A stretch of DNA of 64,000 nucleotides, taken from sequence record MF459647.1. The stretch is one strand, 5' to 3'. Both the position numbers and the translations under genes were made by a program. Shown here piece by piece: positions 8,806-15,354 of the stretch. Position 1 is the stretch's first letter. The number at the start of each line of letters is the position of its first letter. The notes beneath the pieces were generated by a model, which was not told the DNA's origin, did not search any database, and saw only the letters and a list, made by a program, of their open reading frames with translations.

Positions 8806-9044
8806 TATTACAGTATGGGAGGGACGAGCGAGGAATTACTAAACTGTAATAGGTATAAAACCCAGTTAGTTATTTTTAGCAACTATAAGGTTATCTACTC
8901 TGTAGGCTCTTAACCATTAACTAAAGGTTTAACGTTAAGGCGGTTCAGTTCTTGCAGATTAAGTAATTTTCTACTACGTGGTAATATACATATACCGGCT
9001 GTAATGATTTACCACTATAGCCATATTATATTTTTATTTTCTAT

Positions 9045-12262: not shown

Positions 12263-12293
12263 TTCTTTTTGGTTCTACATTACTAGGGTGAAT
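12261..12293 (+). promoter_or_regulatory. Phage early-type promoter
   Basis: AATTCTTTTTGGTTCTACATTACTAGGGTGAAT; the GTG start called at 12288 lies inside this motif, so the real start is probably 12330. Confidence 0.7.
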
Positions 12294-12329
12294 ACTTCCC
12301 TGTTGTTAATTTATTTAAAGGATAACGTA

Positions 12330-13061
12330 ATGTCTACTTCCAATGCTAAAATGAAACCGTCTGTTCGCAAACTGTACGAAGATCGTCTGGTAAAAGCCCA
12401 GGACCATCTGGCAACATTAATGATTGCCCGGGATAATCTGCAGGCAGCTATTGAGCAGGCCCAGGACGACGTGGTAGGTTTGCAACGTACCCTGGCCGAC
12501 GATGAAGTGCTGGGTCGTCGCTCTTTTTATTTACCAACCGGTGAAGCAGCGACCAAACTTGCTCAGGGCATCGATGCCATACTGGCCGCGATCAATGCAG
12601 AGCAGCCTCAACCCGAGTCATGTGGAATGATTGCGGTGCCGTTCAGCTACATCAACGACATGTTGCAGCGCGCCGATGGTGAATCGGTTGAACAACCTGA
12701 GTTACCTGAGTCTGAGCAATTCATGACCATGACCGCACACGTTCCGTTTTATCGCGAACGTACCCAGAGTCACATGGATCGTTTAATGACGCAGCTTAGC
12801 CCAGCTAAACCCGCATCAGACACAGTATCCCGTACGGAACAAGCTCGAGCCATCGTGCAACAGCTGAATGTCGACGACATGTCCATTGCACATTATGTGA
12901 TTGAGCTGTTGGGCAACATGAAATACGACATTCCTCTTATCACGCCTGACAGAATCTGTGAACTGGCGGTGGAAAGGTTTGAAAATATTCATCGTCGTGA
13001 ACATTGCACGGTGATGCAAAACAACGGGGTCCGTTTCTACGTAATGACCGGTCGTAAATAA
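12330..13061 (+). CDS. Hypothetical early protein with coiled coil
   Basis: ATG at 12330 with AAGGA RBS; 243 aa. Confidence 0.7.
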   Translation: MSTSNAKMKPSVRKLYEDRLVKAQDHLATLMIARDNLQAAIEQAQDDVVGLQRTLADDEVLGRRSFYLPTGEAATKLAQGIDAILAAINAEQPQPESCGMIAVPFSYINDMLQRADGESVEQPELPESEQFMTMTAHVPFYRERTQSHMDRLMTQLSPAKPASDTVSRTEQARAIVQQLNVDDMSIAHYVIELLGNMKYDIPLITPDRICELAVERFENIHRREHCTVMQNNGVRFYVMTGRK

Positions 13062-13214
13062 ATAATTTGGCAGTGATATTATAACCCAGAAGCCACTGTG
13101 CATTATATGCTTAAGTGAGGACTGTGTGTTACTGGTACTTTCACTACCGGTAACGAATTGCCCGCCACTGCCATTTTAAAACCTATTTTGGGTATATGTT
13201 ATTGTTAGAAGATT

Positions 13215-13274
13215 TGAGAGTGCTGTTCACTTTTCCGTGGCACTCTCATTTTTATTTTTTTGTTTATTTTTTTT
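13215..13274 (+). terminator. Intrinsic terminator with long U-tract
   Basis: TGAGAGTGC...GCACTCTCA stem (13215-13248) followed by ~25 nt that are mostly T. Confidence 0.8.
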
Positions 13275-13294
13275 GTATGTGTATCTTATACGGA

Positions 13295-13465
13295 GAATAA
13301 TTACCTGAGTAGTTTGACTGCGAAAAGTTTCGGGTTCGCTCTGCAGCTGAATGTCAACAGCCAACACCTCAAACAAAATTTTCGTTATCATCATTTTAAA
13401 CGGATTTAGTCGCCACCACCGGGGAAGCCTGGGATTATCCGGTTAAACTACTCACATAATTCTTT
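13295..13465 (+). ncRNA. Putative ~170-nt structured non-coding RNA
   Basis: 13-bp closing stem 13306-13318/13442-13454, inner stems 13321-13330/13375-13384 and CGGAT/ATCCG; G-U pairs valid only on the + strand; TATG at 13276 upstream, T-tract downstream; no credible ORF. Confidence 0.6.
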
Positions 13466-13474
13466 TTAGTGTAT

Positions 13475-14254
13475 GTTATACACAACCGAACTGAAGCACC
13501 ATAGCAATCTGGACTCGTCGCCTAGAGCTGCGTTTGACTTTTTCTTTAAACCATGGCCTGGCTTGTTGAGTAACCAACGGCAGACTTTGGGTTGTCTTGT
13601 TCAGTCTATTGTGCTTCACCCCTTTACCGTTTTCAGCGCCTGATGTGATTCCAGAGTCGGGTTCCTGCTTTTGTTGAAAACGGTCCTTCTTGCCGGTGCT
13701 CTCTGCACTCACGGTGAAATCTCCATTTACCACGCCCCCTGATTAGGGTTTCGGAGAGTACTGGCAAACCTTTCCTCGGTATGTCGTTTACATGTCTGCG
13801 CTTAACCTTTGTGAGAGCGCGGGGCGCATGATTCGGCAACCCTGGTTACGAGCACTTTATATCTTTCTGCTCACAATCCCTCCCTCAGGCACATGGCCGG
13901 GAAACGGAGGGTCCATCTGATGTGCAACGGAGACGGGTCTGTTGAACTTGCGCGAAAAGATACGGGCTGCCTTTTAATGTGTAATCCCTCAAAGCGAATG
14001 TGGGAGATAGCATCCAGACCCAAAGGCGGTCAAGTTGTTAAAACAAGTAGCCCGAGAATGAGAGGGCGAACGGAGTATGCAGCCTGTTGGCTAGCTCGGG
14101 AATTGAGTCGACCGATACCCGAATTGGCCAATGGAGTGTTTACTTCAGACGGTGACACTAGTGGAAGCATCAGTCGGTGATGCAACTGCAGCGGAAAACA
14201 GACAAAGCTTATTTTTCTATCCTTTAGTTACTCTTGGCCTAGGCCAAGAGTAAC
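13475..14254 (+). ncRNA. Putative large (~740-780 nt) structured non-coding RNA
   Basis: Consecutive long stems 13492-13504/13606-13618, 13626-13636/13674-13684, 13690-13703/13754-13767 plus many hairpins; GC-rich island between AT-rich flanks; TATG at 13472; ends at the palindromic terminator 14227-14254. Confidence 0.6.
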
Positions 14255-14260
14255 ATTTTT
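14227..14260 (+). terminator. Perfect 28-bp palindrome terminator
   Basis: GTTACTCTTGGCCT|AGGCCAAGAGTAAC followed by ATTTTT. Confidence 0.8.
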
Positions 14261-14318
14261 CTATGTTTGCTATTTTTATTTTTTCACTGATTGGCTAAGT
14301 ATATTAGCGGGACCCTAA

Positions 14319-14349
14319 AGATTTTTACCTCTATATTACCAGGGTGTAT
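14319..14349 (+). promoter_or_regulatory. Phage early-type promoter of phuZ
   Basis: ATTTTTACCTCTATATTACCAGGGTGTAT; contains the TATATTAC core known from phiKZ early promoters. Confidence 0.8.
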
Positions 14350-14388
14350 AGGCAACTGCAATTAATCCATTTAATCAAGGAGAAGTAC

Positions 14389-15354
14389 ATGTCTGAATTA
14401 CAATACTACCTGTGTGGCGGCGCTGGCATCTCTATCGGTGTGGCTCTGAAACAACAGACCAACACGGCGGCTAACCGCACAGCTAAGATGGTCGGCATCG
14501 ACAGCTCTGACCGCAACGACTCTGACGGCCTCTTCCCGGTAGTACGTATGGAAGGCACGCGCGGTTCTGGTAAAGTGAAATCCACCAACGCCGAACCGAT
14601 GAAACCGTTCCTGGCAGAAGTGCTGACCCAACACAAACCGGCCAGCTTCAACATCATCGTCTGTAACGCCGCTGGCGGTACCGGTTCCCTGATGGCAACC
14701 TACCTGCTGCAGAAACTCGTCGCTGCAGGTAAAGTGGTGTTCCTCTGCCTGGCGTCTGACGAGACCAGTCAGAAAGAGTTCGAGAACGTCATCTCCACCA
14801 AACGTTCTTTCGCGGCCCAGACCGAGAAAAACCAACTCGACGTGCCGGTTCCGTATCTGGACATTGTTCAGACTCCGGACATGACCCGTGGTGATGCTAA
14901 CCGCCGTATCGTTAATCAGCTTGATCTGCTGAGCCTGTTCGCAACCGAAACCAATGAAGAAGTGGACTACCAAGACATCCTGTCTATGGTCCGCTACTCC
15001 AAAACCTGTAACGTTGCGCCGGCGCTGAGCAAAATCACTTTCCACGATCAGGAAACGGCCCGCTCCTATACTGGTAAAGTACCGGTAGCAGTGTGCTCGC
15101 TGTTTGATAACCGCGATGCGGTAGCGCCGTTGTTCGAAGGTTGTGTATACCGTGCAACCGGTGTGTTCAACAAATCCAACAACCCGCCGGCTGATCTGAA
15201 AGAGATTCACATGGTCTTTGACCACGGTGAAGCAATTGACGAACTGAAGGAGCGTATGGAATTGCTGAACGACCGCAAAATCGTGACAGCCAACAAGTAC
15301 TCTGAAGTTGACAAAGTCAGCGACGGTGCCGACGATTCCGGCGTGTTCTACTAA
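14389..15354 (+). CDS. phuZ: PhuZ phage tubulin
   Basis: GGAGISIG (T1), GSGK (T3), AAGGTGS (tubulin signature) and acidic C-terminus DDSGVFY; ATG at 14389 with AAGGAG RBS. Confidence 0.92.
   Translation: MSELQYYLCGGAGISIGVALKQQTNTAANRTAKMVGIDSSDRNDSDGLFPVVRMEGTRGSGKVKSTNAEPMKPFLAEVLTQHKPASFNIIVCNAAGGTGSLMATYLLQKLVAAGKVVFLCLASDETSQKEFENVISTKRSFAAQTEKNQLDVPVPYLDIVQTPDMTRGDANRRIVNQLDLLSLFATETNEEVDYQDILSMVRYSKTCNVAPALSKITFHDQETARSYTGKVPVAVCSLFDNRDAVAPLFEGCVYRATGVFNKSNNPPADLKEIHMVFDHGEAIDELKERMELLNDRKIVTANKYSEVDKVSDGADDSGVFY

Follow-up and report, generated by a model that had tools for sequence, protein, structure and literature searches.

A predicted rod-closed RNA conserved beside the tubulin gene of RisingSun-like jumbo phages

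Introduction

Phages related to phiKZ form a nucleus-like compartment and possess their own RNA polymerases, and to our knowledge almost nothing is known about their non-coding RNAs. Among bacterial RNAs, 6S RNA, a regulator of RNA polymerase of approximately 184 nt, resembles the element of Erwinia phage vB_EamM_Joad described here in its length, in the double-stranded rod formed by its 5′ and 3′ ends and in its conserved unpaired interior nucleotides. However, the unpaired part of 6S RNA is a central bubble accompanied by a terminal stem, whereas that of the Joad element is an apical hairpin domain of ~85 nt. Membership in the 6S family was rejected, as the Rfam 6S models gave no match at E values up to 10 and the fold combines a rod with a branched apical domain and has no central bubble. 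Stems cleaved by RNase III, such as those flanking 16S and 23S rRNA and the R sites of phage T7, share with the Joad element a coaxial helix of ~27 bp with a small internal loop, which is formed by the flanks of a structured RNA within a tandem array of RNA units; in contrast to them, the Joad rod is longer and is itself under strong within-lineage constraint. The RNA I/RNA II pair of ColE1 likewise places a small RNA beside a large structured one, and a candidate loop-loop contact of 6 bp covaries in Joad, although the Joad RNAs lie on the same strand and are not antisense to each other.

On this subject, a 2026 review goes no further than stating that some non-coding RNAs are expressed by phiKZ (PMC13282480). 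ONT-cappable-seq has identified sRNAs in phiKZ and 201phi2-1, for example sRNA005 upstream of a tail gene; 8 of the 11 are short products of premature termination derived from 5′UTRs, and three are intergenic (PMC11512511). Like the proposed Joad RNA, these are short non-coding transcripts whose position is conserved among related genera, whereas the Joad element is closed by a rod, belongs to an intergenic array with a private motif and occupies a different locus, directly before phuZ. The late promoters of phiKZ have the consensus TATG, with the G as position +1 (PMC4666361). The paper describing Joad and its sister RisingSun says nothing of promoters or intergenic regions; RNA comes up in it four times, always in connection with enzymes. 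No description of the small rod RNA was found in the literature covered.

As judged from the comparative evidence presented below, the stretch 13292-13467 is a real, new and conserved structured RNA of RisingSun-like jumbo phages. On balance, we lean towards the view that it is a non-coding RNA of ~175 nt from the + strand, probably the first of two tandem RNA genes with decamer starts, and that its tip binds a partner.

Genomic context and relatives

The window, that is, the whole stretch of 64,000 nt that was analysed, corresponds to bases 1-64000 of Joad (100% identity), a 235-kb jumbo phage that is related to phiKZ and carries the tubulin gene phuZ. RisingSun, whose genome is also 235 kb in size, is 98.4% identical to Joad over the locus. 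The element lies in a 1327-nt gap (13062-14388) between gp14 and phuZ (gp17), for which the annotation lists only gp15 and gp16, two tiny 'hypothetical proteins' on the minus strand; the genes flanking the gap and the terminator called at 14227-14254 are all on the + strand. No informative Pfam or PHROG family was found for gp12-14, gp18 or gp19.

Since Joad and RisingSun are identical throughout the element, more distant relatives were required. A word-index protein search revealed homologues of PhuZ at 81, 77, 75, 72 and 57% identity and lower. All four lineages with PhuZ 72-81% identical have kept a gene-free gap of 1.2-1.3 kb before phuZ, and this gap aligns end to end with that of Joad. 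A five-lineage alignment was made of Joad, L013, L011, L010 and L008, with the relatives taken from public assemblies, and the lineage with 57% PhuZ identity, L015, served as a sixth in the comparisons of motifs and strand energies. Protein and pattern scans of IMG/VR and the JGI metagenomes returned solely RisingSun itself. L013 and L014 (PhuZ identity 72%) carry the NCBI label Salmonella enterica, so RisingSun-like jumbo phages are probably present in Salmonella assemblies too; the source of further RisingSun-like relatives is food metagenomes.

The gene directly upstream of the gap, gp14 (12288-13061), is hypervariable. Joad and RisingSun differ in it at 24.7% of nucleotides (69% amino-acid identity), compared with 1-4% only in its neighbours, and L013 and L014 differ by 11%; in length the product spans 220 to 574 aa across relatives, and it has no Pfam match. 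At the other end of the gap, an AT-rich block before phuZ (14310-14345) consists of AAAGATTTT, about six variable bases and CTAYATYAY, and is kept out to lineages with PhuZ identities of 48-50%. TATATTAC is also found at 8988, on the minus strand, within the gap that precedes a minus-strand gene. The block before phuZ looks like an early promoter of the clade.

Predicted fold and its conservation

The + strand of 13290-13470 is predicted to fold at −48.1 kcal/mol (z = −3.13), with none of 200 shuffles as good, whereas the − strand reaches z = −1.80. In the model, the 5′ and 3′ ends of the proposed RNA (13292-13467, + strand, ~175 nt, with ends placed from the structure) zip into a rod of approximately 38 bp that carries an apical domain. 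The 5′ strand of the outer helix (13293-13303, GAGAA followed by AAUUA) pairs with 13457-13467, at MEA probabilities of 0.73 and 0.87 for the two segments (13293-13297 with 13463-13467, and 13299-13303 with 13457-13461). A predicted 2x2 internal loop separates it from a closing helix of 15 bp (13306-13320 with 13440-13454; probability 0.98), and the 3′ strands of both helices (13440-13467) end in UUCUUUUU. The rod is extended by a segment rich in G.U pairs (13326-13336 with 13426-13436), in which 11 of 11 pairs form in Joad (P 0.82). Beyond it, the apical domain of ~85 nt (13337-13425) contains invariant blocks and two small predicted hairpins, its fold being partly resolved. One hairpin (13346-13361) displays the loop motif GUCAAC, which is the same in Joad, L013 and L011 and reads UCAAC in L008 and CGACAAC in L010; the other (13381-13404), with the loop AUCAUCAUUUUA, is 92% paired and shows one double change. 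In the five-lineage alignment, the blocks CCUCAAAC (13367-13374), GGAUUU (13402-13407) and GUCGCCA (13409-13415) were located on the + strand, and CCUCAAAC, the AUCAUC-UUUUAAA loop, GGAUUU and GYYGCC are invariant or nearly so across the five lineages.

The original prediction had described a compact multibranch RNA. Its closing helix (13306-13318 with 13442-13454) is present, extends to 15 bp and shows compensatory changes in the five lineages; its expectation that the stems would be conserved in relatives thus holds for this helix, which covaries, and fails for the inner arms, which are not kept. The multibranch model as a whole reaches only −34.5 kcal/mol, compared with −48.1 for the rod. 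The proposed 10-bp inner stem can form 9 of 10 pairs in Joad, where its ensemble probability is 0.06, and L008, L011 and L010 do not preserve it at the aligned columns; the arms CGGAT/ATCCG and CCGGG/CCTGG have probabilities of 0.09-0.12 in Joad and approximately 0 elsewhere. The GCTG/CAGC hairpin fares better, being predicted in Joad and L013 (P 0.81 and 0.72), and in L008 a hairpin with a different sequence is predicted there. An outward extension of the closing helix by AGAAT/ATTCT gives way to AAUUA/UAAUU (P 0.24 versus 0.82), for which double changes are found. One double change, from A-U to C-G, that distinguishes Joad and L013 fits the 10-bp inner stem in a bulged form, and such a local alternative fold might still form in the Joad/L013 subgroup.

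Folded separately, every lineage, L015 included, was predicted to close its 5′ and 3′ ends into a rod of 32-43 bp. RNAalifold, applied to the five-lineage alignment, recovered both the outer and the closing helix, together with 11 pairs in which both sides had changed. When these two helices and one apical hairpin were counted, standard pairs occupied 93.6% of cells, compared with 83.1±1.8% in shuffled alignments, and 10 pairs had changed on both sides, compared with 4.2±1.4; 0 of 500 shuffles were as high on either measure, and the five lineages provide few independent events. Sliding the 3′ partner by 1-3 columns reduced the paired cells from 93.6% to 27-42%. The 13 inner pairs of the closing helix (alignment columns 28-40) are formed in 63 of 65 cells, the outer and closing helices together contain 9 double-changed pairs, and every one of the five lineages has the AAUUA/UAAUU pairs, which carry double changes in L011 and L010. 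Equivalents of the rod extension were predicted in each of the other lineages around a conserved GGG; as read from the predicted helices, L010 has GGAG/CUUC where Joad has CGGG/CCUG. These long imperfect helices, of a kind frequent in AT-rich spacers, can scarcely be credited to chance folding of a functionless spacer, given the z value of −3.13, covariation above all 500 shuffles, the collapse of the slid controls and the lack of substitutions in four strain pairs.

The small RNA is invariant within strain pairs. Joad and RisingSun show 0 differences in 187 positions, while phuZ differs by 2.5% (with the PhuZ protein identical) and gp12 by 4.1%; L013 and L014 likewise show 0 of 187, compared with 0.8% in phuZ, and L011 and L012 show 0 of 186, compared with 1.3-1.8% in the flanks. 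The fourth pair, L008 and L009 (0 of 185), is uninformative, with flanks that differ by 0% except for gp14 (0.8%). At the rates of the neighbouring genes, an estimated nine or so changes would be expected in the small RNA across the strain pairs. Between lineages, by contrast, the small RNA is 44-87% identical, compared with 71-79% for phuZ DNA, and the rod is nonetheless present. Such a combination of strain identity and between-lineage drift is the pattern that a structural RNA with compensating helices would leave.

A covariance model, R1, built from the five lineages, scores 143-200 bits in those five. A pattern scan of GTDB genomes returned chance matches in unrelated bacteria, with R1 at no more than 22 bits at 80 loci; since R1 scores 17 bits in L015, the L015 element, which has the same motif and a rod at the same place, is regarded as a positional analogue only. 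Rfam 15 gave 0 matches in the window at gathering scores and 0 in 13050-14400 at E values up to 10, and ARAGORN found 0 tRNA or tmRNA genes in the window.

Strand and coding potential

The counted helices contain 19 G.U cells compared with 5 A.C cells, and the minimum free energy is lower on the + strand in five of six lineages, the exception being L010, in which the − strand folds better. In L015, the two strands reach −43.8 kcal/mol (+) and −22.4 kcal/mol (−). The RNA is therefore very likely encoded on the + strand, as the original prediction had concluded from its wobble pairs. The same figures bear on a reading at the level of DNA, according to which the element is a replication origin or a protein-binding hairpin whose conservation is unrelated to RNA. 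Replication genes lie nearby, a long inverted repeat could extrude as a cruciform, and L010 departs from the strand preference; against this stand the excess of G.U over A.C cells, the strand energies in L015, the strong over-representation of the neighbouring locus in RNA libraries and a GC skew without a turning point or other origin signal at the locus. Overall, a DNA-level element is very improbable.

No conserved ORF in the element is shared, on either strand, between Joad and five relatives. The ORF of gp15 (13227-13394, minus strand) has a counterpart in 0 of 5 relatives, and no minus-strand ORF of at least 25 aa crosses the gp15 stretch in L013, L008, L011 or L015. An interpretation of the element as a protein-coding gene (gp15) was ruled out, the ORF not being kept in relatives. 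Both gp15 and gp16 (13476-13733, minus strand) lie inside conserved RNA regions. Because the gp15 ORF is not conserved, the gp15 and gp16 annotations are probably spurious, and gp15, and probably gp16, should leave the annotation.

Start and stop signals

A promoter-like decamer, TATCTTATAC (13282-13291, + strand), ends 1-2 nt 5′ of the rod, and 9 of its 10 positions are invariant in six lineages, whereas the sequence upstream of it varies. A second copy, TATGTTATAC (13472-13481, + strand), lies at the start of the neighbouring large RNA of 780 nt, only 4 nt after the end of the rod, and the two define the consensus TAT(C/G)TTATAC. Five of six lineages retain this second decamer where the large RNA begins, in degenerate form in L013, L011, L010 and L008; L015 lacks it. 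TATNTTATAC has 2 matches in the window and 2 in the whole 235-kb RisingSun genome, all of them at RNA starts, and the relaxed motif TATNTTATR shows no enrichment genome-wide (7 matches compared with 5 in the control). Since chance alone is estimated to give about two strict copies in 235 kb, and the relaxed motif is unenriched, the weight falls on the placement and conservation of the decamer. The decamer carries TATA (TATG in L016-L018) where phiKZ-type late promoters have TATG, so it is at best a variant of such promoters. A scan for sigma-70 promoters and terminators called neither a sigma-70-like site nor a terminator at the element.

The original prediction had taken other sequences as start and stop. 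The TATG at 13276 occurs only in Joad and RisingSun and in no other lineage. The T-tract forms the 3′ side of the outermost helix by pairing with the 5′ GAGAA; it was not called by the scan and is not conserved. After the rod, Joad, RisingSun and L013 have a U-rich run; other U-rich strands occupy its position in L008, L011 and L010, L015 has nothing there, and L015 and L008 are without a clear stop. As the rod of L015 runs straight up to the large RNA with no second motif between them, the small and large RNAs may form one transcript in this lineage. The earlier proposal of an independent sRNA in an array of RNA genes thus retains a decamer before both RNAs and a structured RNA on the + strand, and loses the start and stop signals that were named; an array of RNA genes, as opposed to a single UTR, is plausible from the arrangement of these motifs. 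Downstream, the strong + strand terminator at 14227-14254 separates the large RNA from phuZ.

Directly upstream of the element (13196-13262, + strand, five-lineage alignment), a variant motif, TATATGTTATTG, precedes a conserved terminator hairpin and a long T-run by no more than ~10 nt. The sequence of this hairpin differs in L008 and, as read from the alignment, still looks complementary. The unit may be either the terminator of gp14 or a third, tiny member of the array.

EL-like phages offer a comparison for the motif. In phage EL, the relaxed motif has 4 matches, 2 of which fall in the gap upstream of phuZ; one gap motif, TATCTTATA, is followed by a terminator ~130 nt further on, and a terminator-like site lies 130-180 nt after each of the two. 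The EL-like contig L018 has the motif twice before phuZ, with a scan-called terminator after the first unit. The motif-headed units (two in EL, L005 3549-3900, and two in L018, 4495-4880, all before phuZ) measure 130-200 nt, and terminators were called by the scan in three of the four and read from the sequence in the fourth. This succession of motif, short unit and terminator makes the arrangement look like a promoter. The units share with the Joad RNA their position beside phuZ, whereas their sequence and fold differ, as they are predicted to form multi-hairpin RNAs with canonical terminators and not rods. A search of EL, FishSpeaker and L016-L018 with R1 gave no match, and homology of the Joad rod with the EL-like units was rejected both by R1 and by fold.

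Transcription in metatranscriptomes

RNA-labelled runs of a food-fermentation study contain a relative of Joad at 96-98% identity. These data consist of assembled contigs, from which neither RNA ends nor a single transcript can be read and which may include DNA. In run X1 a contig spanning the locus has a depth of 789, and in run X2 a contig covering 13772-14429 has a depth of 3817, compared with 9-68 for contigs of flanking genes; at least the large-RNA region is heavily transcribed. Over the small RNA, the depth in X2 is 41-53 and does not exceed that of the flanking genes.

Two further observations were made in X2. The 3′ 480 nt of the large RNA have a depth of 3817, whereas its 5′ 300 nt (contig 13387-13770) have a depth of 41, and the abundant species of the large RNA may be much shorter than 780 nt. 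In addition, a piece of 99 nt (13318-13416) bears Illumina adapters at both ends and lies about ten-fold above its neighbours, as estimated from bin means. By the orientation of the adapters, its first mate is on the − strand, which in usual stranded libraries corresponds to RNA of the + strand, and its ends match no helix boundary. The piece may be a fragment that is stable, may mark a place where reverse transcription halted at the closing helix or may be a PCR jackpot; because a single over-amplified molecule is possible and the contigs carry no RNA ends, it is a hint only.

Interpretation and alternative explanations

Conservation, covariation of the rod, lack of coding potential and placement of the motif are established for this element. 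Probably it is a gene of its own within an array of RNA genes, and it would then be transcribed independently. In the mechanism that we favour, the phage RNA polymerase would start each of the two tandem RNA genes at its private decamer, TAT(C/G)TTATAC; by analogy with phiKZ late promoters, transcription of the first would begin at the inner TATA, near 13290. The 3′ end would follow the rod, as suggested by the structure, and leave a product independent of the large RNA. The rod itself would define and protect both ends of the RNA, and could serve as an RNase III-type processing stem if transcription reads through, and the conserved tip may act as a docking surface for a partner, either a protein or the 780-nt RNA.

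A blind screen for contacts between the two RNAs singled out the loop UUUUAA (13394-13399), which is the complement of UUAAAA (14038-14043) of the large RNA. These 6 bp change jointly to UUUGAA and UUCAAA in L011 and L010; 8 of 200 column shuffles did equally well, and the change counts as one evolutionary event. The contact between 13394-13399 and 14038-14043 is thus a lead for further work. A separate candidate, pairing of 13396-13406 with the 5′UTR of phuZ, is, as read from the aligned sequences, complementary at 10-11 of 11 positions in Joad, L008 and L013 and missing in L011 and L010, and pairing with the translation start of phuZ was rejected, the duplex energies being no better than those of shuffles (z from −1.1 to +1.7).

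The main rival of an independent gene is a single precursor processed at the rod, in which the element would be the 5′ domain of one RNA of ~970 nt, from the first decamer to the terminator at 14227-14254, and the rod would be a processing stem, cut by RNase III or a similar enzyme, or a folding domain. We consider this possible, though less likely than a separate gene. It would account for the lack of a conserved terminator after the rod, for the distance of just 4 nt from the rod end to the next decamer, for the joining of rod and large RNA without a second motif in L015 and for the missing T-run in L008; the coaxial helix of ~27 bp with its 2x2 loop also resembles known RNase III substrates, and contigs of both X1 and X2 cross the junction. 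However, such contigs cannot prove a single transcript and may derive from DNA, five of the six lineages carry a second decamer exactly where the large RNA starts, and the motif-headed units of EL-like phages have terminators of their own.

A bolder extension of the tandem-gene reading regards the rod RNA and the 780-nt RNA as two subunits of one RNA machine or ribonucleoprotein, expressed from a private promoter class and joined through the loop-loop contact, with the RNAs on the phuZ side of other jumbo phages as analogues and with a role in the nucleus cycle; this is speculative and, at present, improbable.

It is still less likely that the element is a cis-acting leader or attenuator, in which the rod and a U-rich tail would form a conditional terminator gating read-through into the large RNA or phuZ. 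In favour of this reading, both the large RNA and phuZ lie downstream of the element on its own strand, and the rod of Joad, RisingSun and L013 is followed by a U-rich run. Nevertheless, a rod of 32-43 bp offers no evident alternative pairing, the U-run lies 8-13 nt away from the strong helix and is itself paired, the terminator scan is silent, phuZ has its own conserved AT-rich promoter-like block beyond the strong terminator at 14227, and the riboswitch and leader models of Rfam gave no match.

Significance

Strong selection acts on this RNA, which has a defined architecture and is preceded by a candidate private promoter, in a place where the annotation shows two hypothetical proteins. Should the start motif and a partner be confirmed, the finding would provide a handle on a new promoter class of the phage polymerases and would help explain why structured RNA genes cluster beside phuZ.
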